From positions 1,640,017 to 1,704,016 of the forward strand of contig RHPI01003369.1 in the NCBI GenBank assembly GCA_009103225.1: 64,000 bases of DNA, written 5' to 3'. The stretch's first letter is position 1, and every line of letters starts with the position of its first letter. Position numbers and translations under genes: made by a program. This DNA comes from Chlorokybus atmophyticus (Eukaryota > Plantae > Mesostigma and Chlorokybus algae). The notes beneath the pieces are model-generated. The model saw nothing but the letters and a program-made list of their open reading frames with translations, had not been told where the DNA came from and ran no database searches. Below, in pieces: positions 34,998 to 62,472 of the stretch.

Positions 34998-35100
34998 AGG
35001 TGCTACATGCACCATGACAATACGGATCCTCACTTAGTCCTCCTTACTTACCACATAAGTAAGGAACTAAGAGTGACTTAAGCCAGTCCTTTAGACGTGA
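34998..35100 (-). repeat. Hairpin-containing ~100-bp repeat, copy 1 (inverted relative to the copies at 50978 and 52215)
   Basis: Its reverse complement matches 52215-52315 (about 9 differences over a 79-bp core, counted by eye). Contains the 10-bp stem TCCTTACTTA-ccaca-TAAGTAAGGA (35041-35065). Confidence 0.85.
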
Positions 35101-35723: not shown

Positions 35724-36416
35724 GGACCATGAATGGTCCGTACCTCTGGACCGGGATTTTCCCCTGCTAAGTGAAATTGGTGGACCATATATGGTCGGAC
35801 TGTCAATGACAGTCAGACCATGCATGGTCCAAACCTCACGTGAACGGTCCCATATTTTTTTGGGGTCGCACCATGTATGGTGACCTGTTTGTATGAGTTT
35901 GCAAGGACCATGTATGGTGCAATGCCCCCTGGCGCAGAAGACCAGGCATGGTTTGTTACTTCCACATGTCTGGTGATCGACAGTCGCACCATGCACGGTC
36001 CATGAATACGGACCGGAAGTCTTTGTTTTAACTGACATATTTCAGACCATGCATGGTGCGCTGCCCTCCTGGCTCAGTGGACCATTTATGGTGCCAGTCT
36101 GATCGACATTCGCACCATGCACGGTCCATGGATACGGACTTTGTTGTGCATATGTGGTCCACAAGCGGTACCATGCATGGTCCTAACAGACAACGCACCA
36201 TACATGGTCTGATTGACAGTCGCACCATGCATGGTCTATCATAATGTCACATCCATTGAAGCCATGCATGGTCCACAAGCGGCACCATGTCTGGTCCTAA
36301 CAGACAACGCACCACATGGTCTGATTGACAGTCGCACCATGCATGGTCTGTCATGATGTCACAGCCATTGAATCCATGCATGGTCTTAGCATTGGTGCCT
36401 GCACCGTGCCCGGTGC
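35724..36416. repeat. Array of about 18 palindromic (g)ACCATGCATGGT(c) units with variable spacers
   Basis: Copies at about 35724, 35783, 35816, 35869, 35907, 35941, 35988, 36046, 36081, 36114, 36170, 36197, 36224, 36261, 36284, 36311, 36336, 36373, 36401. Includes a ~113-bp tandem duplication (about 36156-36268 and 36269-36380). Confidence 0.92.
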
Positions 36417-36779
36417 ATACAATCGGACACGCATGCAATTCACAGAAATGTTGTAATGGACTGTTAAACGACAGCCCATCAGTGTCAATCCAGTGAGACT
36501 GTAGCTACAGTCTCCTACATGCACTTCAAGCTGCGGTTACAGGAGGTAACAGGAGCAGCTAACAACATCAGTCTCTTGTGTTGCCAGCACCTTCGCCTGG
36601 AAGCCAGACTTGTGCTCTCCCTGGTTGATTCAGCCCCAATGTGAAGACACCCGCGACAGCCTTGCTCAACATCATCTCTTGCAAACACTCAGCGAGTGCT
36701 TGTTAAGCTCTGCACAACAAATGTACTGTCACGTGCTTACACAAACAGTAACTTGACCATAGCACAGGAAACCACCCAC

Positions 36780-38988
36780 CTAGGATGACGAGGGCTGTCG
36801 CGTCCACTGCCTCTTAGGTCGGAATGGCTTTCTCTTCTTTGCCTCGCTCAAAAGCCCTGCATTGTACCAAATCATCACTCTTGAAAACCAGCAAAGGACT
36901 GTCGTTAACTTGCTGCAGTGAAGTATGCATACCTGGTAGTTTGCGATTGGATCCCCACTCGCACCCTCCTTCAACATCTTTGTTGGACACCAACCACTTT
37001 TTCCTGGCAGCAAAGCTGACAATGGCTCTCAAGATCAGCTCGTCTGGCACACGCTCCATTCGGTCGGGGTCCTTGAATGCCAGCTGGTGACCATTGTGGA
37101 ACAGCGTGTGCTCGATGTGGTGGTAGTACTCATACATGTCTATTGCCTCCTCTCTGGTGGGGGCGTTGGGCTTGGTGTTACACACGATCCCCGCTGCAGT
37201 TCGCAAGTCCATGGCGGCGGCTTCTTCATCTTCACAGTCAGAGATCGCCCCAGCAACCTGCCTAGGACCCAGAGTGGTCAGTGCAGTCCATTGGCGACTG
37301 TCAACACCATTGACAGTCTGCAGTGCGTTAATGACTGTCAAGAACTGCAACATGTAATGCACTTTGCGGCTGTCAAGGCGTGATCAATGGCTGCATTGGC
37401 GACTGTTCATCATGTGACAGCAGCCTAACAACAGCCCTTATTAACCTCTGTGTCTGTGCTGTGCCTGGCTGCGGGCGTATGCAGCCGGTCCTTGATGCAA
37501 CCCGGCACCGCAATGCGCTCATTGTTAGCACATGCCTCACAGGGGCAGATGCCTCCGCTGGCCAAGCACATCATGGGCCACTCCATCTCCCTGCCCTGCA
37601 TGTTGTTGTGTTTAACACAAGAAATGCTCATACACTACACCATACAGTCACAGCAGGAGCATGTGCATATCCACAGCAAGCAATGTACCTCCAGAGTACG
37701 CCCACCATGGCAGCTGCTTGTCGGCGTGCCATAGAGAAAATGCCTTTCTTTCACATGTAGTTGAACGGCAAGGTTGCCATCCTCACTTCTCATTGCCATG
37801 CAGTGGTTAACAGAGACTAGATACGTGCGCATTGGTTGGTCTGGCTCGCATACGGAATCGATGGTGGCGACGCCAACAACTATTGCGTTGTTGCAAATGT
37901 CGAACACCTGATCTTTAGCAAATCCGTTCGCACCCCTGTCGTGACACGCAGAGTAGCATTCAGAGTAGCAGGCACCATGTGTTAAGCCAGTATGCATGGA
38001 GGCAGCAGCTCAGCAAAACAGTACAATAGGACCGACAATCGACCGACAGCACCATGGTTGCTTACCTCTCTTTTAGCCAAGTGGCCCGGTACTGAGCGTT
38101 TGTGAGAGGAAGAGCGGTTAAAGGCGCAAGCATGACCACCTGCTGGTTGGCCCTCATGTCCCTCCCCAGACAAAATGTCATGCCCCAGCCAGCTCCAGCT
38201 TGAGCAGCGCGGCTGCCTTGTGCAGCTTCTCTGTCGCTGGCACGCCTTTGCTTCTTGGCCTCATTGCGTTCTTGGACGCTCTTCCCGGTACCACTGCCGC
38301 GCTTCGCGCCAACGGAGTACTGCAGCACCAGTACATGCTGCTTGATTTGTGCTGCAACACAAGCAGATAAGAGTACAGCAAAGTACCAACGGCAAGGACT
38401 GTCAACGGCAAGACAGCTCCAATACAGCATTTTCAGCTGTTGGAAGATGGCATCTAGCAGAAGACAGCCTCAAATACAGCATATCGCAACTGGTCAATGA
38501 ATCAACAAGCACAAACACAGCAACCAGGGCAAGGACTGTCAACGGCAAGACAGCTCAGCAGACAGTGAGTGAACTGAAAGCTGAACGACATGCTTGAAAG
38601 CTCACTTCAACACAGCTGAATTCAAGTTTCTGTCAAACATCAGATGTCACCAAGAAAGCAGCTCACCTTTTGTCCACGTGAGCGCGTGGTTTGCGTCAAA
38701 GACCAGTGGAAGTGACTGCTGCAAGACCGCCTCGCATACTTCGTCGAGCTCTTGCCGGTGCATGGCATTCATCTTGAAGTCCTTGCCCTTCATACCTTGA
38801 GGTAGTGGCCACTTGCTTAGCATCTCCTTCTTCAGCTTCTCCAGGTTGACCATCAGCGTAATGCGCATATGCTTGTACTCCTCCTTCATCAAGAACTGCT
38901 GGCCTGTCACCTGGCCCAGCAAATGGTTGCCCTTGGCCCTGAAGCAATCAGCTGCAGCAGGCAGTTGGCTGCCCTCCCCAATAGCCAT
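36780..38988 (-). CDS. Orphan multi-exon gene of unknown function (5' end not resolved)
   Basis: At least 5 exons join in phase with GT-AG sites: MAIGEGSQL...HALTWTK / AQIKQHVL...TWLKER / GANGFAKDQVF...GRTLE / GREMEWPMMCLASGGICPCEAC...DTE / VAGAISD...GSNRKLP. No recognisable domain. Confidence 0.55.
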
Positions 38989-39390
38989 AATGTCAGCTGA
39001 ACAGCCTGAACAAGCAACCGAACTTAGTGCACAGACAGTGACTCAGCGCACAATCAACAAGGCATGCAAGCTTCAAAGCAAAACACCTTTCAGGTAAGCG
39101 CTGACAGCTCAAGCAGCAAACCACAAACGACTAGTGCAATTTTCAAGCAACACACAACCAGGGCGCATGCAAACTCGCAAGCGAACTCACTACTCACTCA
39201 CTAGGACTGTCAAGTCCTATTGTGTTCCATATGGACAGTCGCACGAGCCGCACAAGCATTGTGATCGCCGCACAAGCCGCAATTGTGCAGTGCTAAATGC
39301 AGTGCGACACAGTCAATGGAACTCACAAAGCTTGCGACGCGGCTGTCAATCCCTAGACTCACCTTATATCTGAGGGTTGTCATTTATTGT

Positions 39391-39419
39391 CGTCGAATCG
39401 ACGCCACGTCGAATCGACG
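39391..39419. repeat. Two tandem 13-bp palindromes CGTCGA-A-TCGACG
   Basis: Copies at 39391-39403 and 39407-39419, between the two divergent island genes. Confidence 0.85.
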
Positions 39420-39639
39420 CCAAACGCACTGCTAGCAACAAATTGCGTAGAATTTACAAGGCGGCTGTCAAGGGTTAGCAGTGTTAGGGCTAGGGACTCA
39501 CCAACTTGGCGGCTGTCATTGATGGGACATCATAGATTGGACGGGAGGTTGGCGGCGTACATAGCCGTTGCATGGTCTCGCTAGTATAGTTTGCTATTGT
39601 TGTGGTTGTGGTGGTTGTGGTTGTGGTTATGGGTGTAGC

Positions 39640-40447
39640 TCAGGGCGCAGGGTGAAGCGAGGAGAGGTGTGCGGAGCTGTGAGGAGTTGTACAAGACAGT
39701 CGCTAGGAGAAGGATTGCCAGGCAGTTGGACATCATGGAACGAAGGCGGGCGTCCACAGGGGCGCCGTTTATTTGGGGCTGCCCGTTCTGCATGTGCAAT
39801 GTGCAAGCTGGTCACCGTGATGCAAGGGGTCAACCAACTGGGGGAGAGACCAAGCCCACCAAAATCGGACAGCACTTCAACACGCAGGTGTGCCGATGCG
39901 TGCGCATGACCAACAACCGGGGCGGTAGGGAGGACTAGGATGTGTGCAAGGCTATGGGGCTTCAATACCAGCAAGCCATCAAGGTAAGAACGTTCAACAA
40001 TCAAGATTGTTTACGACATGCATAGGTTGTCAATGCTCTGTGCTAAGGCGCATCGCGCATCGCATTGACAGTCGCTGCTGGGATCCTGTGCATGTCACTT
40101 GCTATGCATGATGTTGTTTTGTTCTATCAGCCTAGTTATCAACTTACATTTGCGTGACATGTCCCATTGCACGAGAAACTCACCAGCAGCGTATTGCAGA
40201 AGGATCAATTCCCGGCCCACCCTCACCCACATGTCGCGGTGCTGAAGTACTACAAAATGGCAGAAGTCATGGCCATCCCAGGATGGGTGAGTTAATGCAT
40301 TTGTACACCAATTATCGCGGCATTCTTACTTACCCAAGGTTACAGACGCAAGAAATGTGGGACGAAGCGGGACGGCTGTCAAGGCAGTATATCTTTTGGC
40401 CTCGCAATACGCAGTTGGAGGTGGAAGAGGAGCAAGCGGAGCAGGCG

Positions 40448-40483
<36 letters not shown>

Positions 40484-43400
40484 GAGCCGGAAGGAAGCGA
40501 GGAGGCAGACTCGGAGGAAACTGCAGATGTCTCAACAAGTCCATCATTGCGTAAATCCTCCGCACAGCAACGCGGCAAAGGACCTGCGGTGGATCTCAAA
40601 GAAGAGTTCCGTGCAGCTCTTCAAAAGATGCAGAGGTTTGAAGTGAAACGCTACAGTTCCACGGGCACCACACAGCCACCCAACCTGTCGGACGACATCT
40701 TGAGGGTAAGCACATGTCTTGAATTACCCCCCCCNNNNNNNNNNNNNNNNNNNNNNNNNNNNNNNNNNNNNNNNNNNNNNNNNNNNNNNNNNNNNNNNNN
40801 NNNNNNNNNNNNNNNNNNNNNNNNNNNNNNNNNNNNNNNNNNNNNNNNNNNNNNNNNNNNNNNNNNNNNNNNNNNNNNNNNNNNNNNNNNNNNNNNNNNN
40901 NNNNNNNNNNNNNNNNNNNNNNNNNNNNNNNNNNNNNNNNNNNNNNNNNNNNNNNNNNNNNNNNNNNNNNNNNNNNNNNNNNNNNNNNNNNNNNNNNNNN
41001 NNNNNNNNNNNNNNNNNNNNNNNNNNNNNNNNNNNNNNNNNNNNNNNNNNNNNNNNNNNNNNNNNNNNNNNNNNNNNNNNNNNNNNNNNNNNNNNNNNNN
41101 NNNNNNNNNNNNNNNNNNNNNNNNNNNNNNNNNNNNNNNNNNNNNNNNNNNNNNNNNNNNNNNNNNNNNNNNNNNNNNNNNNNNNNNNNNNNNNNNNNNN
41201 NNNNNNNNNNNNNNNNNNNNNNNNNNNNNNNNNNNNNNNNNNNNNNNNNNNNNNNNNNNNNNNNNNNNNNNNNNNNNNNNNNNNNNNNNNNNNNNNNNNN
41301 NNNNNNNNNNNNNNNNNNNNNNNNNNNNNNNNNNNNNNNNNNNNNNNNNNNNNNNNNNNNNNNNNNNNNNNNNNNNNNNNNNNNNNNNNNNNNNNNNNNN
41401 NNNNNNNNNNNNNNNNNNNNNNNNNNNNNNNNNNNNNNNNNNNNNNNNNNNNNNNNNNNNNNNNNNNNNNNNNNNNNNNNNNNNNNNNNNNNNNNNNNNN
41501 NNNNNNNNNNNNNNNNNNNNNNNNNNNNNNNNNNNNNNNNNNNNNNNNNNNNNNNNNNNNNNNNNNNNNNNNNNNNNNNNNNNNNNNNNNNNNNNNNNNN
41601 NNNNNNNNNNNNNNNNNNNNNNNNNNNNNNNNNNNNNNNNNNNNNNNNNNNNNNNNNNNNNNNNNNNNNNNNNNNNNNNNNNNNNTTATCGATGGCCACC
41701 CCCGCACTGGCAATGTGGCAGCTTACATCAATTCCGTACACGGGCAACAACGTGAGCCCAACGCCATGCTCTGGTCGGACTTCGATGACGCTGGCAAGCC
41801 AGCTGTCACTGTGTATGCGATCAAGGACATACAGGCAGGAGAGGAGCTACTACTGGACTATGACCCTTTCCGTGGGCCACCTGATGGGCAGACAGACAAA
41901 GTAAGTGGTTGCATTGTTGCATGCATGCTTGCTTGTTAGGCAGCTGTCAATGCCAGACTGTCAATGCAGACTGTCAATCTGTTACAGGACACTAACTGGC
42001 CTTTTGGTTGCAGACCCAACTGTGGAGAATGGAAGATGTTGCGCAGAAGTTTGTATATGGCTGGGGGCTGGCCATGGAGGACGCTATGTGGCTGGTAACG
42101 AGCAAGGCGCCAAGGGAGCCGGGCGAGAGTGCCAGGGCGTATTCCAGGCGGTTGCTCACCCGTGCTGTCAAGCTGAAGCGCACCAGATCAATGGTAAGTT
42201 ATGTATTTTTGCAAAGGCAATGCATGTACATTGACAGTCCCTTTTTATAGTCTGTTGTTGGCATGCAAATCGCCGTGCAGTTCGTGAACTGCACCACGGA
42301 TTGCATGCCAACAACCAATAGAGTATGCACGTCTGTCAACAGATAGACCCTGAAGCTCATGTTCAGCGCCAAATATCTGTTCACTTCTGTAAAGCTGTGC
42401 ATGACGCTGCCTATGAAATGAAAGAGGCAGCAAACAGACAAGTAGACGACCTCAAAGAAGTCATTAGAGACTTAGAGCTACGGATTACACAAGAGAATGT
42501 GCTCAGGGTACGTTGCCATGTAGGCCACCAAACATTCCACACAGAGCCCTAACTTGTTACCTTTGTTTGCAGGAGAAAATGGCCGCCATGTACACCAAGA
42601 CAGTCGAGGCGCACCAAGCTCAGACACTTGGCCTGGCTGCCAGAGAGAAAGCTCTTACCCGGCAGGCTGTATCGCTTGACTGCAGCAGGAGGAAAGGGAA
42701 AAGCATTGGGAGAAGAAGATAACAGCTGTTCTTCAAAAAGGCTGCAAGAAGCTCCTCTCCGAGGTGATGCAAGACGCGCTGCGTGTCATTGTCAACGAGC
42801 AGATCGAGCACGAGGAGAAGAAGGAGGAGCAGGACAAGGAGGCTGATGCAGCACGTGCATTGGAAGCCATGACGGAGCCTTCCACTGCGGCTCAGGCGGT
42901 GCCTGCTAGGCCTGAACCTGTGAACCCCATGAGTGATATAGAGATTGATTCGCATCCCCTGTGGACTTGGCTCGAGCGCGCCAACATGCGTCCACCCACC
43001 ACTGGTCCAAGGCCCATGCGGTCTGACAGGCCAAAGGACAGTCCCCCTCACAGTCCCACTCACAACCCCCATGGCCCACCGTCCCCTCCCCCTCACAATC
43101 CCCATGGCCCACCGGCACCTCCCCCTGGTACTAGTATGCCAGCTGGCACCAGTACGCAAGCCCCAGACCCTCCACGTGTTGACAGTCCCAAGCTACCGAT
43201 AACAGCAGGTCCCCCTCCCCTGACTCCACCACCGTCCAAACCGTCCAAAAAGCAGCGCTAGGACCTGCCAGCAGCCACAGAAGGAACTCCACAATCAACC
43301 ACGCCATCAACTAGTCAGTCCACCCCTACCGGAACCTTGCAGCTATCAACCTTGCAGCTATCAGGCTCTTCGTTCAGAGAACGTCTGCGAAAAGTTGTCG

Positions 43401-44532
43401 CAGGTCCGACACCATCAGCGAATACGCCAACACCAAGTACGCCACAGGGCCGGCCGCCTCTACCTCTGCATAATGTCACCCGGGACCTGACTCCCGGCGC
43501 TGAGCCCGAGGCGCTTGTGAAGATACGAGAAGCCGATAGCGTGCACGCCGCCGACCTCGACGCTGCATTGCAAGCCGTGCAAAACCTTGCATCTGCAGCA
43601 AAGGTACAGTTTATACACACATGGGCTGTCAACAAGGCTTGCAGCATACTGTTTGCGCCCGCATGGGCACAAACTGTTGACGACGACCATTGAGGACTGT
43701 GAACAGTATGTGCCCATGCGGGCGCAAACTGTTGACAGTCCTCAATGGTCGTCGACGACTGTCACAGAGTTTGATGCATGTTGACAATGCTCTGCTAGCT
43801 AGTGTGTGGACTCACTTCTTGTTTCGTCCAACGAGCGGGCACAGACCAGTCACACGGTCTTGCAAGAGTCCATGCGCAACTTCAATGAGATGCGCAAAAA
43901 GCAACTTGAACGTGCTCTCAACAATCTGGAGGAGTCGCACCGGCAGCGTAGGCTGCTGGCTGATAACTTCACCCGTGAAGACAAACTGCTGCGGCAGCAG
44001 CTGCATGAGCTGCAGCAAAGGGAGTTCGCAGCAAAATCCCTTGCTGAGGAGCTGCAGCAAAGGGAGTTGGCGGCGGTATACAATGCTGAGGAGCTGCGGC
44101 GGCAAAGGGAGTTGGCAGCAAAATCCAATGCTGAGGAGGTTGACAGTCTGCACCGGCAGTTGCTTCAGGCACAGCAGGAGGTTGCAGCATCAAACGCATC
44201 GATGACCAACATGGCGGCAGACGCAGAGAACCGTTGGCGCTCCACCGATGCGGTGCTTCACGAGTACCATCAGCGCAACGCCAGTGTTGGAACGGGTGCA
44301 GCAGCTGGAGTCCACCTCAAGTGCGGCGGCCAATGTTGGTGAAGAGCTGCACCGTACAAGGGAACAGCTACTCAAGCTGCAGCAGCAAGCGGTACAACCT
44401 GTTCCTGAGGCTGTCAACGCTGAGACTGTCAACGCACTGACAGAGAGAGCTGAGCGAGCAGAGAAGCAGTTGGAAGAGGTGCGAGCCCGCAATCGAGAGC
44501 TGGAGCAACAGTCGGGGCACGCGCAGTGTTGA
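39640..44532 (+). pseudogene. Long decayed multi-exon gene: Cys/His-rich N-terminus, acidic/polyQ, SET domain, helical region, Pro-rich region, coiled coil; truncated by the copia LTR
   Basis: After the gap: IDGHPRTGNVAAYINSVHGQQREPNAM...VTVYAIKDIQAGEELLLDY (SET C-terminal motifs GN.a.yINh..PN and I.aGEEL..dY). In-frame TAG at 39936 and 43259, frameshifts near 42680 and 44270. The frame otherwise continues through several GT-AG introns; the terminal TGA is supplied by the LTR (TGT TGA). Confidence 0.7.
40735..41685. other. Assembly gap (951 N)
   Basis: Run of N; hides the N-terminal part of the SET domain. Confidence 1.
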
Positions 44533-44966
44533 AGGACTAGCATGTACATGTAGCTGAGGCAAGCATGGATACACACGGACAGAGCTACCGCCACCAGAGC
44601 ATACACAAGTCACATCACATTCATCTATTACAAGTTGTCCGCTGGTTCTTATACCAGCCAGTTACACACACGTCTACGTTTGCAAGCACTGCGTAAGTTA
44701 TACTCAGCCCTTTGACGCGCTCTAAGCTGCGTTGTCTTCCTTACAACTAGAGCTTTCCAACGAGCTCTTACACGCCTCATATGAGTAAGTATACGCGGAG
44801 ATACGAAGCAGTTAGTAAGGCTCCTGTCTGGAGTCCGGAGTCTGGTCCGACGATGCCATCTTGCTAAGTCCGGACCTAATGCTCGTCCTTACGACCTTCT
44901 ACTCCTGTGTGGAGGGTCGATGCTGATCGTATGTAGGAATGACTCTCAACACTCCCACGCGAGCAG

Positions 44967-45689
44967 CTAGAGCCCAGGGTCTGCAGAGGATGCGGTGAAG
45001 CCAAGTGCCTCCAGCTCCTTGGTGAGCTTGATGTGCCACATACGCGGCGCCTGTCGCAGCCCGTACAGTGCCTTGATCAGCTTGCACGCTGTGCCTCTCT
45101 CCCCTTCTTCATATCCAGGTGGTTGCTCGATGAAGATCTCCTCCTCCAGCTCTCCGTAGAGGAAGGCAGTCTTTACATCCAGGTAATGTAGCTCTAGGTC
45201 TTCAGCAGCAACCATAGCTAGCAGTGCACGGAAGGTGGTATGCTTACTTGCAGGTGCAAACACTTCGTTGAAGTCCACACCTTCCTGCTGCAAGAAGCCC
45301 TTTGCCACCAGTCTTGCCTTGTAGCGCTCAATGTTGCCCTGACCATCACGCTTCACCTTGAAGACCCATTTCACTGGAATGGTCTTCACTCCTTGCGGTA
45401 ACTGCTCCAGTGACCAAGTGTTGTTGGCATGGAGTGACGCAATCTCCTCGTCCATAGCACGCTGCCATTGCTCCGCATCTGGTGCTAACAATGCCTCCTC
45501 GTAGGTGCTTGGCTCCTCATTCTGCACACTGGCGACGTGTGCCTTGTGTAAGAAGTCAGGTGCCTTTCTCTCCCTCACTGGGTATCTCCGAGCTGCGTGC
45601 TCCTGCTGTTGGTACGGCCCCTCTTGGCCTGCTACAGCTGAGTCCTGCTCACCCTTGTTGTTGATGATGGCCTTGCCTGTAGCCTCCAC
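44967..45689 (-). pseudogene. Copia reverse transcriptase, N-terminal half only
   Basis: EEPSTYEEAL...WQRAMDEEIASL...WVFKVK...YKARLVAKGF...DVKTAFLYG...LIKALYGLRQAPRMW; the YVDD motif and RNase H are absent before the PPT. Confidence 0.93.
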
Positions 45690-47845
45690 TGTTTCAAGAA
45701 GCCTGCTTCTGTTTGTGATAATCCCTCGTGGAAAACCACCTCTCTGCTCACGATGATCTTCTGAGTGTCCTCGAGCAAGATCCTGTAAGCCTTGGAACCC
45801 GGTTCATAGCCAACGAAGATGCCCTTCTTGCTGACCGGCTCCAGCTTGTGCCTGAGCTGTTTAGGCACTAGTGCATATGCCGTGCATCCAAACACACGCA
45901 TACCACTCACATCTGGTGTGGCTCCATAGAAGTGCTCCCACGGAGTCTTCTGCTCTGAGCTCACCGGAGACCTGTTGCGGATGTAGTTGGCAGTGAGTAC
46001 CGCCTCCTTCCACAAACTGTCTTCCATCTTTGTGTCGTTGAGCATGGCTCGAACACGCTCCAAGAGTGTCCTGTTGAGGCGTTCAGCTGCTCCATTCTGC
46101 TGCGGGGTGTAGGGTGCCGTTGTCTCGTGGCGTATGCCCTTGCTGGCGAAGAACTCCTTCAACTCCTTGTTGATGTACTCCCCTCCTCGGTCACTCCTCA
46201 TTGCCTTTAACTTGTTGCCAGACTGCGTCTCGAACAAGGCCACAACTGTGCGCACGGCTCCAGCAACTTCTGACTTGAGCGTCAATGGAGAGATGATTGA
46301 CAGCTTGCTGTAGTCGTCAAGGAATGTAGCAAAGTACCTGGCCCCTCCCTTCGCCACAATGCGCATAGGGCCACAGACATCCATGTGCACAAGCTCGCAA
46401 GGATGCTGACTGCTAGAAGAGGATGATGGGAATGGCATAGCATGCTGCTTTGCAACCAGGCATGGTTCACAAAGTGCACCTGATGCATTCTTGAGTTCTT
46501 CTGTGCTGAGATGGATGCCCTTGACCATCTTTTCAGCGACAAGGCGAGTGAGGTTGACGTAGCTGAAATGCCCGAACCTTCGATGCCACAATGTTGGCGA
46601 CTCCTTGTCCTTCACCACCACGGCTTGACTGTCAATGTCCTTAGGGTGCTGCTCCACGTGGTAGAGCCCTCCCGGATAAGTGATTCCAACCATGTCCACG
46701 ACCCCATCAAGGTTAAATGTGCAGCCACCCTTCCGAAATAGGATCTCCGCGCCTAAGCGCTCCGCAACCCTCACAGAGAATAGACTCGCAACAGCCTTAG
46801 GAACATGCAGGACGTTGCGTAACAACACCTCGCGTAGTGTGTTACCAACCTTGCACTGGAGTCGTACGTTGCCAACTCCCTCAGCCACCAGTACTTCGCC
46901 ACCGAAGCCCGCCACCTTGATTGTGGACGTCAGCTTCCTGTAGCCCTCCATCACCTCCTTGTTTGGTGTGAGATGACGATCGCAGCCAGAGTCCACCACC
47001 CAGAAAGCTGTGCCCGCCCTCGAACTGGATGCAGTGAAGGCGACATGTTTCTCCTTGTGTTGGTGCTCGTTGCCGCTGTTGCTGGTGCTTGCTCTAGGTT
47101 GCCCCTGTTGTTTCTTCCTACAGTCCTTCACAATGTGCCCCTTCCAACCACACCAGTGGCATGTGAGGTCTTTGTGACGAGGATTGCCTGGCTTGTTGCC
47201 CTTGTACTTCTCTTCATGGTTGCTCTTCTTTGCGTGCTTGCCGGTGTAGAAGGCGACGGCATCCGCTTGCTCGTCCTTCTTCACAACCTTCTGCTCCACG
47301 GTGAGCAGCTTCGGTAGCACATCGTCCACCGTCAACTCCGATGATGACGTCTCCAGCAGGGTTGCGACGACCTCGTACTCTGCTGGTAGCCCTGCAACAA
47401 TGGCCAGCACTACCTCCGTCTCCCCCATGTTGTGGCCGACGTTGATGAGGTCCGCCCACAGCTCTCTCGCGCGCGCAATATACTTTGTGATGGGTTCTGC
47501 TGTCTCCTGCCCGAGTGCGCTGAGCTGCTTGCGTAGATGCAACTTTCTGGCATTGTTCTTGGCTCTGAAAACGGCTGATAGCTTTTCCCAAGCTTGTCTA
47601 CCATCTTCACATGCAGTGAGCATGGGAAAGTGATGCGGTTTGCTGTTCAACACAAGCAAAGAGTGTGCTTCTGCTGAATGCTCTGACCACACAGTGTTCG
47701 CTCCTGGTGTTGGTGGTGGTGCCTTCGGATCAACGTACTTCCACACCTTCTTGTGGATGAGCAAGGCCTTCATCTCCACGCACCATGTGTTGTAGTTGTC
47801 GGTGTCCAGCTTTGCAATCTGCCCCTTGTCGTAGGTCGCCTCCAT
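45632..47845 (-). CDS. Copia gag-protease-integrase ORF
   Basis: Uninterrupted ORF from MEATYDKG through the integrase. The RT part (44967-45689) is in a different frame. Confidence 0.92.
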   Translation of the reverse strand: MEATYDKGQIAKLDTDNYNTWCVEMKALLIHKKVWKYVDPKAPPPTPGANTVWSEHSAEAHSLLVLNSKPHHFPMLTACEDGRQAWEKLSAVFRAKNNARKLHLRKQLSALGQETAEPITKYIARARELWADLINVGHNMGETEVVLAIVAGLPAEYEVVATLLETSSSELTVDDVLPKLLTVEQKVVKKDEQADAVAFYTGKHAKKSNHEEKYKGNKPGNPRHKDLTCHWCGWKGHIVKDCRKKQQGQPRASTSNSGNEHQHKEKHVAFTASSSRAGTAFWVVDSGCDRHLTPNKEVMEGYRKLTSTIKVAGFGGEVLVAEGVGNVRLQCKVGNTLREVLLRNVLHVPKAVASLFSVRVAERLGAEILFRKGGCTFNLDGVVDMVGITYPGGLYHVEQHPKDIDSQAVVVKDKESPTLWHRRFGHFSYVNLTRLVAEKMVKGIHLSTEELKNASGALCEPCLVAKQHAMPFPSSSSSSQHPCELVHMDVCGPMRIVAKGGARYFATFLDDYSKLSIISPLTLKSEVAGAVRTVVALFETQSGNKLKAMRSDRGGEYINKELKEFFASKGIRHETTAPYTPQQNGAAERLNRTLLERVRAMLNDTKMEDSLWKEAVLTANYIRNRSPVSSEQKTPWEHFYGATPDVSGMRVFGCTAYALVPKQLRHKLEPVSKKGIFVGYEPGSKAYRILLEDTQKIIVSREVVFHEGLSQTEAGFLKQWRLQARPSSTTRVSRTQL

Positions 47846-48643
47846 CTTGTCGCTCCTGCCTTCCTTGCAGTTGACACCCAAGGCTCTGCTACTAACAAGC
47901 TACCGTAGTGTAGAACTACTAATGCACACAAGCTAGTCTCACACTCTTCAAGCGTAGTGTGGGCCCATAACCTGTTGAAGGACTAGCATGCACATGTAGC
48001 TGAGGCAAGCATAGACAGACAGAGCTACCGCCACCAAAGCATACACAAGTCACATCACATTCATCTATTACAAGTTGTCCGCTGGTTCTTATACCAGCCA
48101 TTCACACACACGTCTACGTTTGCAAGCACTGCGTAAGCTATACTCAGCCCTTTGACGCGCTCTAAGCTGCGTTGTCTTCCTTACAACCAAAGCTTTTCAA
48201 CAAGCTCTTACACGCCTCATATGAGTAAGTATACGCGGAGATACCAAGCAGTTAGTAAGGCTCTAGTCTGGAGTCCGGAGTCTGGTCCGACGATGCCATC
48301 TTGATAAGTCCGGACTCAGTGCTCGTCCTTACGACCTTCTACTCCTGTGTGGAGGGTCGATGCTGATCGTATGTAGGAATGACTCTCAACAGATCCTGGG
48401 GTACATCTAAACCTTCTTGGTGTACATAATCTTTGTATAGTACAAGCGTGTTAATGCTTAAGATGAACATCAGTGTTTTTATGCCTTCTTTCAGTAATGA
48501 CCACTCACAACAAGCACAAATGAGCACATGAGCACAATTAACAGCCGCATGGACTGTAAGTGACACGTATTGCCTTGTTGCAGGCTGTCAACCACTCACA
48601 ACATGAAACCACACATGAGCACAATTGACAGCCGCAACGACAG

Positions 48644-50700
<2,057 letters not shown>

Positions 50701-50977
50701 CCACTGCTCCCTCAGCTCACGCTGCTTTTACTCAACTCATGGACAGATTACTGGGTATTGCCTAACCTCTAACTGTTGTTGGTATGTGCAAGCACTGCAC
50801 GCTGATACACAATGTCAGAGTTGGTTGTCACTCTCACGATTTGCACTACTTTCATGCATGGTGTTGCAAGTGTTGAAAGGAATTTGATCACCATGTCTCC
50901 GTTTCGTGCAAGACATGTGTCTCATTATGAGAGTCTTTTGCAACGTGGCATTGCAATACATGTGGGAGGAATGACCG

Positions 50978-51107
50978 ACGCACCCATAGGGCTAGCCAAA
51001 GTCAGTCTCTGTCCCTTATTTATGTGAGAAGTACGGACCAAGTGAGGATTCCGCTCACACAAGCATGTGTAGTGCTTGTTGGGTGTGCTCATGCGGTCTA
51101 CTAGTAG
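50978..51107 (+). repeat. Hairpin repeat family, copy 2 (more diverged)
   Basis: GGGCTAGCCAAAGTCA...GGACCAAGTGAGGATTCCGC...ATGCGGTC...CTAGTAG aligns with 52215-52356 in direct orientation. Confidence 0.75.
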
Positions 51108-51112
51108 ATGAG

Positions 51113-51142
51113 CATAGGCTCAAGAGTACTCTTGAGCCTATG
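51113..51142. repeat. 30-bp perfect palindrome
   Basis: CATAGGCTCAAGAGT|ACTCTTGAGCCTATG. Confidence 0.95.
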
Positions 51143-52214
51143 AGGCCTTGGATATGATGAACTACTACTGTGATACAAAGGCAATGCAATGTGCTCGCCA
51201 CTTATAATGAGTGGCGAGCACATTGCTGATCATAGCCAATAGACATCATGTGATATACAGGGACATACGTGTGCATATGCGCGCATGCATATGTATGATG
51301 TCTGTAATTGTTAAGGCTGATGTGACAAGCCAAGGATGTTCACAATATCCGAGGCTGATGGGCGTGATCAGCCAGAGGCATAACGATGGTTCTGAGGCTG
51401 ATGTATGACATTCCCAATGCTAGAACGAGGTCAATGCAGCCACGACAAGGCAAGCCTTTGACATGGTTGCAGTTGTTCTAGGTCGGAGAGCAATAAAGGG
51501 GTATGTAAATGGTCCCAACAAGTGTTGAAACAGCTCGGCATGTGCATACTCGACTCTTGTGTGCGGGGTGCCTAGTTTAATTGTTCAAGGGCTCCCTGCA
51601 ATCTCATGTGGGGTGTGGTATCTGTGGCAGCTCTGCACGCGTAGAGCGTGCATGTGTATGTGTGGGAGCTGAGTAGGGGGGGGGTTGGTGCTTTCCTCAC
51701 CTTCCTGAGTGTGGTGCTGAGACTTCCCCTGCAAGACGCTACACTGTTGGTGCTGAGACTCCCAACTGTAAGTCATAGCTTGTAAATAAGCTTGCAAAGC
51801 CGTCCAACAAGCAAGTAGTATTCATCACATTGTGAACAGCGTCATGATAACCAAGTTCAACATTGCAAAGCGGAACGCATTATTTTCATGTATACAACAC
51901 ACAAACCACCTTGCTATGTACTTTTTGTTTTAATAACTATTTAAACTATTTAAACCATGCATTTGATATCGTGTATTATACATTACATAGTAGTACATCC
52001 AGTCGCTGCTGCACCTGCCCATTGCTGTTGCATTGCACAGCATTGCACGTATGCTAGTGCAGTAGGTGTAGTAGTGGTGGTTAAGTAAAAAGCTATACCC
52101 CTCGGTCAAATTTGCGCTGTGTATCTTGCTATCTATGTGCCCTGGTTGCTTGTGTTTCTGCCTTTGCATGTACTATTATGCTGTATACTTTAATACTTTT
52201 TCATGAAATTACTA

Positions 52215-52356
52215 TCACGCCCAAAGGGCTGGCGAAAGTCACTCTTAGTTCCTTACTTATGTGGTAAGTAAGAGGGACCAAGTGAGGATTCCGCATGCCA
52301 TGGTGTGTAGCACTTGGTATGTGTGCTTATGCGGTCAGTCCTTGTCTACTTAGTAG
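52215..52356 (+). repeat. Hairpin repeat family, copy 3
   Basis: Inverted match to 34998-35100 and direct match to 50978-51107; stem CTTACTTA-tgtgg-TAAGTAAG. Confidence 0.85.
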
Positions 52357-53274: not shown

Positions 53275-54272
53275 ATGGCTGACGGAGCTGCCAACGTTGC
53301 CTTGTCGCTGTCGCGGCTCAAGTTACGGAGCTGCAAAGCCAGGTCCAGGCCATGATGGCGGCCAACACGTCCATAAAGGAGCAGCACGACCAGCAGCTAG
53401 CCAAGTTGGTTGCTGCAAACGCCCATAAGATGATGCCTAGCCTCGAATTTTTCTCCGGCACCCATGACGGGAAAGGCAAGGATCTTGGCGTGGCCGTGCA
53501 TAATTGGCTATTCGGCTGTAAGCGTGTGTTGCATGCCGCAGAGGTGTTGCCTATGCATGAGGCCAAAGCGGTGTCGCTTTTGGCATCCTACTTGCGCGGC
53601 AGTGCTGCCCGCATGTGGGAGGGGGCTTCTCCACGTTTAGAGGCCGCTGACAAAGTTGTCACGAGCTTGGATGTGTTCGAGAGTGCTATGTTGCAGGCCT
53701 ACGGGGGTGTGAACCCGTCGCAGAAGGCGCGTGACAAGCTACGTCGCTTGAAAGTCAAGCCCAACCAGTCCATCGAGGACTTTACTGTCTACTTCGAGTC
53801 CGTGTGTGCCGAAGTTGGCCCCGACAAGCCTCTGTCTAAGGCAAAGAAAATGGACAAGTATTGGGCCGCCTTGCCGGAGGATACGGCAAAGCAATCAACC
53901 TTCAAGGAGAGACTTGAGTCCTTCACGCATGCCAACTGCGACTTGATGAAGCGCACGGCCGTTCAGAATGACAACAGCCAGCGCATGATCGACCAGGCCA
54001 AGAAGTTGACGATTGTCAACAATAACCAGCCCTCCTCGTCCACTCCCTCGGTGGGAGGTGGCAGTGGCAACAGCCGCAAGCGCGGCCGCCCTGACGGTAG
54101 AGGCTAGCAGCCCGCCCAGCTGATCAACAAGAAGCGTGCACTCAGCATCCCGGGTGTCACCGCGGAGCGCAAGGGCGCTCGCTTCAAGGCCGGCTTGTAC
54201 CTCAGGTGTGGGGAGAAAGGCCACCGTGTGGCGAACTGCCCCAAACCCTCCTCCGACAAGCCTGTAGCATAG
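53275..54272 (+). pseudogene. Ty3/gypsy-like gag (capsid plus degenerate zinc knuckle), no pol
   Basis: FSGTHDGKG...VHNWL...AVSLLASYLRGSAARMW...FESAMLQAYG...ARDKLRRLKVKPNQSIEDFTVYFE (retrotransposon gag pattern). Frameshift near 53310, in-frame TAG at 54105, then YLRCGEKGHRVANC (CCHC with the first Cys changed to Tyr), stop at 54270-54272. Confidence 0.8.
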
Positions 54273-55318: not shown

Positions 55319-55362
55319 AATTCTAGCATGCTTCAAGCATATGCTTGAAGCATGCTAGAATT
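55319..55362. repeat. 44-bp perfect palindrome
   Basis: AATTCTAGCATGCTTCAAGCAT|ATGCTTGAAGCATGCTAGAATT. Confidence 0.95.
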
Positions 55363-60242: not shown

Positions 60243-62390
60243 TCATATGGACTTTGGCAGCCCTGTTCTCCTATCAAGCAAAGCTGTTGCCTCATCTGCA
60301 GTAATGGATGGGCCTTCACCAACACGCGTGGATATCAAGTACCTAAGAGCGCCTAGATGCCTTTCACGTGGCTGCCACTTGTCTTGGACAGCCTCTGCTT
60401 GCTGTAACAATGCGTCGTCTCCAACATACCTGTTATTCACATGACTCCAAATTCAGCACACGCAACTTGACTGAAACTGCTGTACACAACTCACTTACTT
60501 GGACACAGTTGTGCCTTCCGAAGGAGGGAATGTTTCAAGCACCCGATGCAGCAGCTCCGGCATGTCCTGCTCTAACGCAAAGAGGACTGCGTTGGGCCCG
60601 GCATCAAACGTGTATATGGCCTGTCAAGACACAAACATCAGTCACACTATCGCTCGTGGGATAAGTGGTTATGCTGCTCTAGCTGAGCCAGTGAGTAAGT
60701 GCACACAGATGTGGGCACTAGCAACAACATGCACAGCTCACCGTAATTCGGTGCTTGTCTTTGTTCAATTGTTCCACTAGCTCAATCACCCTGCGGACCA
60801 GGTGCTTCGGTCATTGCCGAGAATGAAAGCGAGAAACATCGGTGCACATGCTTTCAAGCGCATGTGTGTGCGTATGGCTGCGCGCATACAGGCACACGTG
60901 GGTGCCCCAGCACGGAGGGGGGGGGGGGGGGGNTGCGTGTACGTGAAAGCACGCAAACGTGAGCGTATGTCTGTGTGTGTCAGCGCGCACGTGCACAAAC
61001 GGTCACGCTTGCGTGCGAGAACACCCACATGCGTCAATGCGCACGTTGACGCATTTGTGCATTGATGCAGGGTGTCTGGGTGCATGCATGTACGTGTAGA
61101 GAGAAAGCAAGCACCTGAGCGCATGCGTGCAGGTGGGTACACATGTGTGTGGGTGTACAAGTATGGGCGCATGCGGGTGCGTGCGTGCGTATGTGCATGC
61201 TTTGAGTGAAGTGTCAGCGGACAACGCACTGACTGTCTGGAGGTGTCGTTGAGGTAGAAGATGGGAGGGGCGGTGTCTAGACAAGTTGCATGAAACTGGT
61301 TGCTGTCTGCCGCTGTTAACGACCCAAAGCTGGTAAAGTCACGGTTCTGAATGGCCTGCTCCATTGCTGCCATGCGCTCCGGCACAATGTGCTGCCCAAG
61401 AACAACGAACAACATATTCAAACTCGTCACTGACATGCTGTATGCACTATTCTACAACTGTGTGTTGCCATGTCATGCATGGACACATACATAGACCTTG
61501 CAATGCTGCCATGCATGCATTCGGGCGTGTGTGTAAGCAAGCCAGATGTACCCATGCACCTCGCACATGGACAAGCATGTATGCTTTTGCAAGTACCCAT
61601 AACAACAACATGCTAAAAGTTTGGCGCGAAGCAGCACACATACCTTTGCACGGTGTGCGAGCAACGGGCTGGTCTGCACGGATCTGCGCATGCCATCTGA
61701 GCTGCTGGTGTCTTTGCGGCGGTCGCTGACGACGCAGATGAGGACTCGAAGGTCAGGCCAGTGGTGCTCATCGGCCACCTGCACAGCAATGCTGTCGCCG
61801 CCGTCGGCGGCAACGCCCACATCCCAGCGGACAAAACCCCCATACAGGCTGCGGCACGCACTGCCTGAACCCATGCGTGCAATGGCTGAGAGGGGGAGGC
61901 GGTGGTTTTGGTCGTTGCTGTCGTTGTTGTGGTCGCCAGCAACACCCAGGAGCTGCGCCACGCAGTAAACCAGGCCTGCCAGGCCGGCCGCAGAAGATGC
62001 CAGGCCGGCGGCAGTGGGGAAGCTGTTGGAGGAGGCCACGTGAAACTTGAGGTCAGGGCGGCCGGCTCGGGCCCGCAGGGCGTCCAGGCAGGCTCTGTGG
62101 CGGGGGTGGGCGGCCATGTCCAGCTCGCCCGACCCAGCCAGCCATATGCGGTCGCTGGAGAAGGAGGCGGAGGCGGTGGCGGACGTTGTGGCGGCCAGGC
62201 GGCCTGGGTCCAGCGTCACCGACAGCGACGAGTTCAGCGGCAGCACCAGCTTCTCATCCCGCTTGCCCCAGTACTTGATCACGGCAATGTTCGTCGGACA
62301 CCTCACCGTAACCACCTGCAGCTCCTCCTCACCCAGACCAGCGCCGCCATCCACCTCCACGACCGCCGCCGCCACCACCTCCGAGGCCAT
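60243..62390 (-). CDS. MVD: Diphosphomevalonate decarboxylase (5 exons: 62390-61644, 61391-61234, 60790-60742, about 60621-60500, about 60430-60243)
   Basis: [29 protein letters not shown]; [16 protein letters not shown]; [19 protein letters not shown]; [16 protein letters not shown]; [21 protein letters not shown]; [11 protein letters not shown]. Confidence 0.97.
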
Positions 62391-62472
62391 GTTGGCGGGA
62401 AAGTCACAAGCACTGTTGGGGTCCTCTTCTGGGGTTTTGCAGTCGGGTCCCAAACACCTAACTAAAGAGACC

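Follow-up and report, generated by a model that had tools for sequence, protein, structure and literature searches.

The Plavaka elements of florideophyte red algae (Bostrychia), members of the EnSpm/CACTA superfamily, are 17.4–19.1 kb long, mostly degenerate, and carry the accessory genes PAG1–3; PAG2 combines an N6-adenine DNA methylase with a SET domain, and PAG3 has no Pfam domains and lies beside tandem inverted-repeat arrays (bioRxiv 10.1101/2025.02.11.637652). HarbingerS and MuDR elements of Phytophthora encode SET histone methyltransferases (Kojima and Jurka 2014, as cited in PMC12730594). Genes for TET/JBP dioxygenases are known as cargo of KDZ, Plavaka and EnSpm transposons in fungi (PMC12730594). 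The VANDAL (MuDR) elements of Arabidopsis encode an anti-silencing protein, VANC, which recognises short motifs across the element's own copies and changes their chromatin state. Here we describe a SET-domain gene (39.95–44.53 kb, plus strand) in a stretch of eukaryotic nuclear DNA of 64,000 nucleotides with about 51% GC (contig RHPI01003369.1), the whole of which is referred to as the window. The gene lies in a block of about 17 kb (35.0–52.3 kb) together with a divergently oriented gene, here called gene X, and a remnant resembling the tail of a transposase, which converges on the SET gene. We consider the chances evenly balanced that this is the dead SET accessory gene of a large, defective, EnSpm/CACTA/Plavaka-like DNA transposon.

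Results

A short motif confined to the block

All 21 exact copies of the 9-mer TTGACAGTC in the window are located at 35798–50584, whereas 0.84 would be expected and none of 100 shuffles contained more than 4. Each of the three gene units of the block contains the 9-mer, in exons as well as in introns, and the other ~47 kb lack it. Its extended form is GACTGTCAA(T/C). Many copies are arranged as inverted pairs with variable spacers, for example at 35797–35813, 37296–37318 and 49606–49631, and one copy (46627) lies inside a Copia element that is described below. A literature search for the 9-mer returned primer sequences only. We regard this saturation of the whole block, exons included, as the most unusual feature of the locus, rather than the SET gene itself.

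Gene X (36817–38988, minus strand) is an intact orphan of four exons with canonical splice sites, coding for about 461 amino acids. It is separated from the SET gene by a spacer of 1–1.3 kb and is still open, whereas both neighbouring genes are broken. Its product had no Pfam match, nothing meaningful among the PDB sequences and no relative in IMG/VR, and the model that AlphaFold produced without an alignment was unusable (pLDDT 36). Beside the 3′ end of gene X, at 35726–36384, the 12-bp palindrome ACCATGCATGGT forms an array that is partly organized as a 112-bp tandem unit. The array comprises 14 copies (with at most one mismatch) within 660 bp, as against 0.53 expected in the whole window, and is situated 430 bp from the gene X stop codon.

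On the other side of the SET gene, a remnant at 48644–50711 (minus strand) resembles by eye the C-terminal half of an EnSpm/CACTA transposase. It contains two in-frame stops and an intron filled by a microsatellite. The motif FWCYAFER is followed by EPYILVRGQQ, an order which we take to be that of DUF4218 and DUF4216 in EnSpm/CACTA transposases, again as judged by eye. The microsatellite within the intron, (GT)22(GA)40, occupies 49440–49564.

A repeat of about 100 nt is present towards both ends of the block. The left copy (35000–35100) is inverted with respect to two right copies and is 86% identical to 52215–52313. The inner right copy (50983–51098) is 76% identical to 52220–52336, and the outer right copy (52215–52336) is a possible right edge of the block. 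The inverted repeats begin with GTGCTACA; their flanks do not match. Just to the right of the block, an open reading frame (ORF) of 251 codons (53352–54107) resembles a retrotransposon gag by eye; at E≤1 it has no Pfam match, and it might be part of a different retroelement.

Structure of the SET gene

In a preliminary description of this DNA the SET gene had been presented as one decayed frame of more than 1,200 codons with a multidomain layout. A three-frame translation led to a different picture: the gene is spliced and multi-exonic, its pieces occupy all three plus-strand frames, and the readable codons number about 890 (about 940 if the possible 5′ exons are counted). The introns are located at 40287–40345, 41901–42013, 42194–42342, 42508–42572 and 43604–43835, and a sixth donor at 40706 leads into an assembly gap. 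All visible introns are of the GT..AG type and in phase 0, so that every internal exon consists of a whole number of codons, and five of the six donors read GTAAG, GTGAG or GTACG. When a codon-usage model was built from the host and Copia coding sequences of the window, its log-likelihood peaked in the proposed frame for each of the nine exons. The six phase-0 GT..AG introns and the coding scores together argue that this is a real spliced gene.

A possible but weak first coding exon (39954–39984, MGLQYQQAIK; donor AAG/GTAAGA) has a positive coding score, over 15 codons only, and would join position 40176 in phase 0. The exon at 40176–40286 contains an ATG at 40257 (MAEVMAIPGW); its frame is open upstream to 40158, the donor is TGG/GTGAGT and the coding score is +0.23. 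The following exon (40346–40705, 120 codons) codes for a polyQ and acidic linker, and its donor (AGG/GTAAGC) enters the gap of 951 N at 40735–41685. Hidden in this gap are the rest of the intron and the SET domain's N-terminal half. The C-terminal half of this domain (GNVAAYINSV...PN...IQAGEELLLDYD) is encoded at 41686–41900, directly after the gap. Downstream of it we found a post-SET exon of 60 codons (42014–42193) without a family match, a helix-favouring exon of 55 codons (42343–42507), a long exon (42573–43603) with helical, Pro-rich and Ser/Thr/Pro-rich parts, and a last visible exon (43836–44526) for a helical tail, which is cut by a Copia long terminal repeat (LTR).

Near-perfect palindromes of 30–115 nt are located at 42254–42315, 43648–43762, 51113–51142, 51186–51226 and 55319–55362 and could be small foldback elements. 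Those at 42254–42315 and 43648–43762, which contain the 9-mer, each fill an intron of the SET gene.

Outside the SET domain, little of the proposed layout was retained. The polyQ and acidic linker is present, as (GCAACA)6 at 40447–40483 with acidic flanks, and so is the Pro-rich region (~42990–43250, 22% Pro), which includes a 33-nt repeat at 43054–43126. A long coiled coil with ELQQRELAA repeats had also been proposed. The repeats were found, as three 42-nt units at 44007–44138 encoding (E)ELQQRE(L/F)AA, and the composition of the tail favours helix (66% EQLARK, 2% P+G); a crude test for a 3.5-residue periodicity was not significant. A coiled coil is plausible here, but "helical" is the safer term for this tail. 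The supposed Cys/His cluster falls apart into two frames with no coding signal. Its CPFC..H..C.C part belongs to an upstream ORF (39639–39935, plus strand) which ends in a TAG at 39936, has a codon-usage score of about 0, a higher GC content at second than at first codon positions and no Pfam match, and probably lies outside the SET protein. The CVTC part is in another frame, which scores negatively, has no Pfam match and cannot be joined to the polyQ/SET frame without a stop. For the segment REPGESARAYSRRL of the post-SET exon, which had been likened to a gag capsid, no gag or capsid match was obtained in Pfam or among the PDB sequences (E≤1 in both). What is left of the multidomain layout is half a SET domain and a tail of low-complexity and helical sequence.

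The SET domain

The segment encoded at 41686–41900 matches the Pfam profile PF00856 with E=2e-7 and 31.8 bits, above the curated cut-off of 22.4, and the SET C-terminal motifs recognised earlier are thereby confirmed. The match starts five residues past the gap and covers profile positions 56–104 of 105. An exhaustive phmmer search with 294 non-repetitive residues against 1.84 billion representative proteins gave only three matches (P0001–P0003), all of them SET proteins aligned solely to the SET segment, with E-values of 7.7e-11 for P0001 and 2.8e-7 for P0002. The latter, the nearest of the three, is a double-SET protein of 407 residues, encoded on a metagenome contig of 1.6 kb, which shows GN.A.YINS...PN in both of its domains.

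The canonical cofactor motif (R)FINHSC..PN is not found in the segment, which reads AYINSVHGQQREPN: the Asn is kept and the His is replaced by Ser. The divergent YINSV had been noted before and is indeed there, but not as a sign of decay. Since YINS recurs in both SET domains of P0002 (RYINSF), we consider the variant a trait of a SET subfamily. The catalytic-Tyr motif ELxxDY is present as GEELLLDYD at the end of the match, and its LLLDY context is common to P0002. The gene product would be a divergent SET-domain lysine methyltransferase in which "NS" replaces the usual "NH" of the cofactor motif, with a long tail, disordered and helical, behind the SET domain.

Other searches were less informative. 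The SET segment gave only weak matches to SUV39H2, SET1 and ASH1L among the PDB sequences (E≥0.16), plus a chance match to RGS7, and only generic SET matches in the IMG/VR and metagenome scans. A word-indexed protein search with the conceptual product of 533 residues gave no matches; low-complexity words probably swamped it. A parallel to the SET proteins of giant viruses had been drawn previously. In IMG/VR we found no specific similarity to the giant-virus vSET, the likeness being generic to any SET domain, and one viral match, a 150-residue ORF on a phage-like contig (L001) sharing an AIKDIQAGEE motif and 40% identity over about 60 residues. Such small viral or phage SET proteins differ from the product described here in that they stand alone (~150 residues) and have the canonical NHS motif. 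As the viral similarity is merely generic, there is no evidence of a viral origin.

State of the gene copy

Three lesions interrupt the proposed reading frame. Two of them are in the long exon, namely a shift of −1 near 42677 and, at 43259–43261, an in-frame TAG; the third is a +1 frameshift near 44277 in the last exon. Every GT..AG pair capable of mending the frame at these positions was then listed. A candidate phase-0 intron of 95 nt (42669–42763) could remove the first frameshift and a candidate intron of 120 nt (43152–43271) could remove the TAG. The donors are weak (GTATCG and GTACGC between the two), and stretches scored as coding would be lost with both introns. For the shift near 44277 the listed pairs included no credible intron. 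A GT..AG pair only 17 nt apart (42669–42685) would mend the first frameshift exactly; it was rejected as probably a coincidence, the other introns here being 59–232 nt long. Decay resembling repeat-induced point mutation was also rejected, the GC content being normal.

At its 3′ end the SET reading frame runs straight into the Copia LTR at 44527, and the apparent stop at 44530 is LTR sequence. Most likely this copy of the gene no longer functions: one frameshift is firm, another and the stop codon are probable, and a Copia element lies on its 3′ end. Given how poorly the region is assembled, an intact gene retains some probability.

The Copia element itself (44527–48391, minus strand) is a defective LTR retrotransposon, the LTRs of which (44527–44951 and 47973–48391) are 94% identical. 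Its RVT_2 domain is truncated at the LTR (position 152 of the 244 in the profile). No target-site duplication was found (flanks CGCAG and GATCC), and consequently the two flanks may not originally have been contiguous. The truncated reverse transcriptase and the missing duplication suggest an internal deletion or a recombination between two elements.

Host genes in the window

Outside the block the window contains host genes with short GT..AG introns, coding for an NADPH-cytochrome P450 reductase-type flavoprotein (5.9–7.5 kb), the largest subunit of an RNA polymerase (~9–12 kb), an RQC-domain helicase (~21 kb) and a heparinase II/III-like protein (~29 kb). A further host gene, for diphosphomevalonate decarboxylase (MVD), is situated at 61473–62453. 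In a collection of 5.8 billion proteins the best match of the host MVD (Spirogloea, land plants) is merely 58% identical, and it therefore seems that the proteome of the source is missing from the collection; negative homology results are for this reason silent on copy number in the genome. The DNA appears to stem from a lineage that has been little sampled and that possesses a mevalonate pathway. Neither Rfam nor tRNA scanning of the window gave any match. Tracts rich in TG/CA and in GA at 30.2–31.8 kb and 56–58 kb give rise to long spurious ORFs rich in His/Thr or Ser/Leu.

Discussion

We read the block as one unit because the 9-mer is exclusive to it and shared by its three gene units, and because the palindrome array, the repeats at the edges and the stop-ridden remnant accompany it. 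The same observations sustain a good part of the earlier proposal that the SET gene is associated with a transposon. Its other part, which would have called for element ends, a target-site duplication, a catalytic transposase and a second copy, found no counterpart in our data. The gene is linked to the transposon by its context, and a role as transposon cargo is plausible.

Several observations weigh against the reading of a dead transposon gene. The remnant has no Pfam transposase match (E≤1) and no homologue in the protein search, and nothing was returned for it from IMG/VR. A DDE catalytic domain was not found: neither the remnant nor gene X matches a Pfam transposase, and no long ORF is present at 50.7–52.3 kb upstream of the remnant. 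The ~100-nt repeat occurs in three copies and its similarity extends past the supposed end of the block, and hence it does not have the form of a clean terminal inverted repeat. A comparison of 31–36.5 kb with 50.7–56.5 kb revealed no CAC..GTG termini with a target-site duplication of 2–5 bp, and the window holds no second copy of any part; none was found in the protein collections or the metagenome contigs either. The codon usage of the SET exons fits the host and Copia model, so that the gene shows no sign of a foreign origin. Of the three internal lesions, two are removable by weak introns. Finally, an N6-adenine methylase of the PAG2 type was not seen, as there is neither a PF01555 match nor a DPPY-type motif in a coding context at 34.5–53 kb; it is unlikely that the methylase part is concealed in the gap of 951 N.

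Some of these points would be expected if the SET gene were an ordinary host gene or pseudogene in a repeat-rich stretch, with independent transposon debris around it and with the 9-mer as a product of local history, for example of hairpin repeats inserted in introns. Its introns and codon usage are like those of the host genes, neither element ends nor a duplication nor a second copy is at hand in the window, an unrelated Copia element has clearly inserted in the region, and hairpin repeats do lie within two introns (42254–42315 and 43648–43762). Against such a local history, the 9-mer is present also in the exons of all three units and nowhere in the other ~47 kb. Moreover, no orthologue was found beyond the SET segment among the 1.84 billion representatives, which would be unusual for a conserved host chromatin enzyme, and the layout mirrors that of published SET-carrying elements. 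We therefore regard a host origin as possible but on the unlikely side.

The lesions admit two further explanations. If they were assembly or sequencing errors or introns that we failed to recognise, the SET gene could be intact and expressed, with a protein ending near the Copia junction. The gap within the gene does indicate poor local assembly, the upstream exons and the neighbouring gene X are free of lesions, and the introns at 42669–42763 and 43152–43271 would dispose of the first frameshift and the TAG. Against this stand the weak donors of these introns and the coding-like sequence lost with them, the shift near 44277, for which no credible intron is available, the frame that runs into the LTR, and the stops in the adjacent remnant; an intact gene is in our opinion quite improbable. 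Alternatively, the region could be a chain of at least two unrelated genes or ORFs, with a short SET gene ending by the TAG at 43259 and a separate gene for a helical protein downstream. The in-frame stop and the frame changes would fit such a chain, as would the failure of the protein searches to find a homologue spanning the parts. However, the frame stays open for 143 codons beyond the TAG, for which simple arithmetic gives a chance probability of about 0.001, and the parts are on one strand, connected by phase-0 GT..AG links, without an intervening start context and with continuous coding scores. We give this chain of genes little credence.

If the SET gene was indeed the accessory gene of an element, the SET protein of an intact copy might methylate a lysine of histones or of some other chromatin protein at the copies of the element itself, to which it could be brought by an element-encoded DNA binder recognising the GACTGTCAA sites, the ACCATGCATGGT sites or both. 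The anti-silencing role suggested in the preliminary description is speculation, and a role in silencing or in self-marking is just as conceivable. A bolder version would have the block as an undescribed large transposon of a eukaryotic lineage that is poorly sampled, in which gene X or a partner reads the 9–10-nt GACTGTCAA[T/C] sites spread over its whole length and recruits the element's own SET methyltransferase to place a histone mark on all copies. We think this a long shot; if true, it would be a self-addressed chromatin writer, similar to VANDAL/VANC but enzymatic.

Transposons carrying SET genes have already been published, and the block is a modest, unproven addition to them. Because this copy is broken and a gap hides half of it, its use lies in directing attention to intact copies at other sites of the genome. 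Among the described systems, Plavaka is alike in several respects. Its elements measure 17.4–19.1 kb, and the distance between the outer repeats here is ~17.3 kb; the SET accessory gene PAG2 has its counterpart in the SET gene, and the domain-less PAG3 with its inverted-repeat arrays in gene X with the ACCATGCATGGT array. A CACTA-type transposase is present there, whereas here a tail fragment was recognised by eye only. The present host is unlikely to be one of the red algae represented in the protein collection, and the likeness to the PAG proteins is one of description. By analogy the block might work like a Plavaka-type element, its membership not being established.

The HarbingerS and MuDR elements are likewise DNA transposons with a SET gene as cargo; they belong to other transposase superfamilies, and the likeness is again by description only. 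No PIF/Harbinger or MuDR transposase and no Myb-like partner was detected with Pfam in the ORFs of the block. The fungal TET/JBP elements are CACTA-related and have an enzyme for an epigenetic mark as accessory gene, but that enzyme oxidizes DNA bases, whereas the one considered here would be a protein lysine methyltransferase. VANDAL/VANC is the model for the anti-silencing idea; VANC is not a SET-type enzyme, and its motif binding is demonstrated, whereas ours is guessed. The closest sequences to the SET segment itself are those of the environmental multi-SET proteins P0001–P0003 (31–36% identity), of which P0002 shares GN.A.YINS...PN; these are tandem-SET proteins without similarity outside the segment.

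If the link between the SET gene and a transposon holds, the 9-mer that runs through the whole element would be a concrete candidate for aiming a chromatin writer at the element's own copies. The locus would then speak for a repeated recruitment of epigenetic writers by mobile elements. It would be a further independent case of a DNA transposon that acquired a chromatin-modifying enzyme, from a lineage without proteins in the large public collections searched, to be placed beside HarbingerS, MuDR and Plavaka with their SET genes and the fungal elements with TET/JBP.

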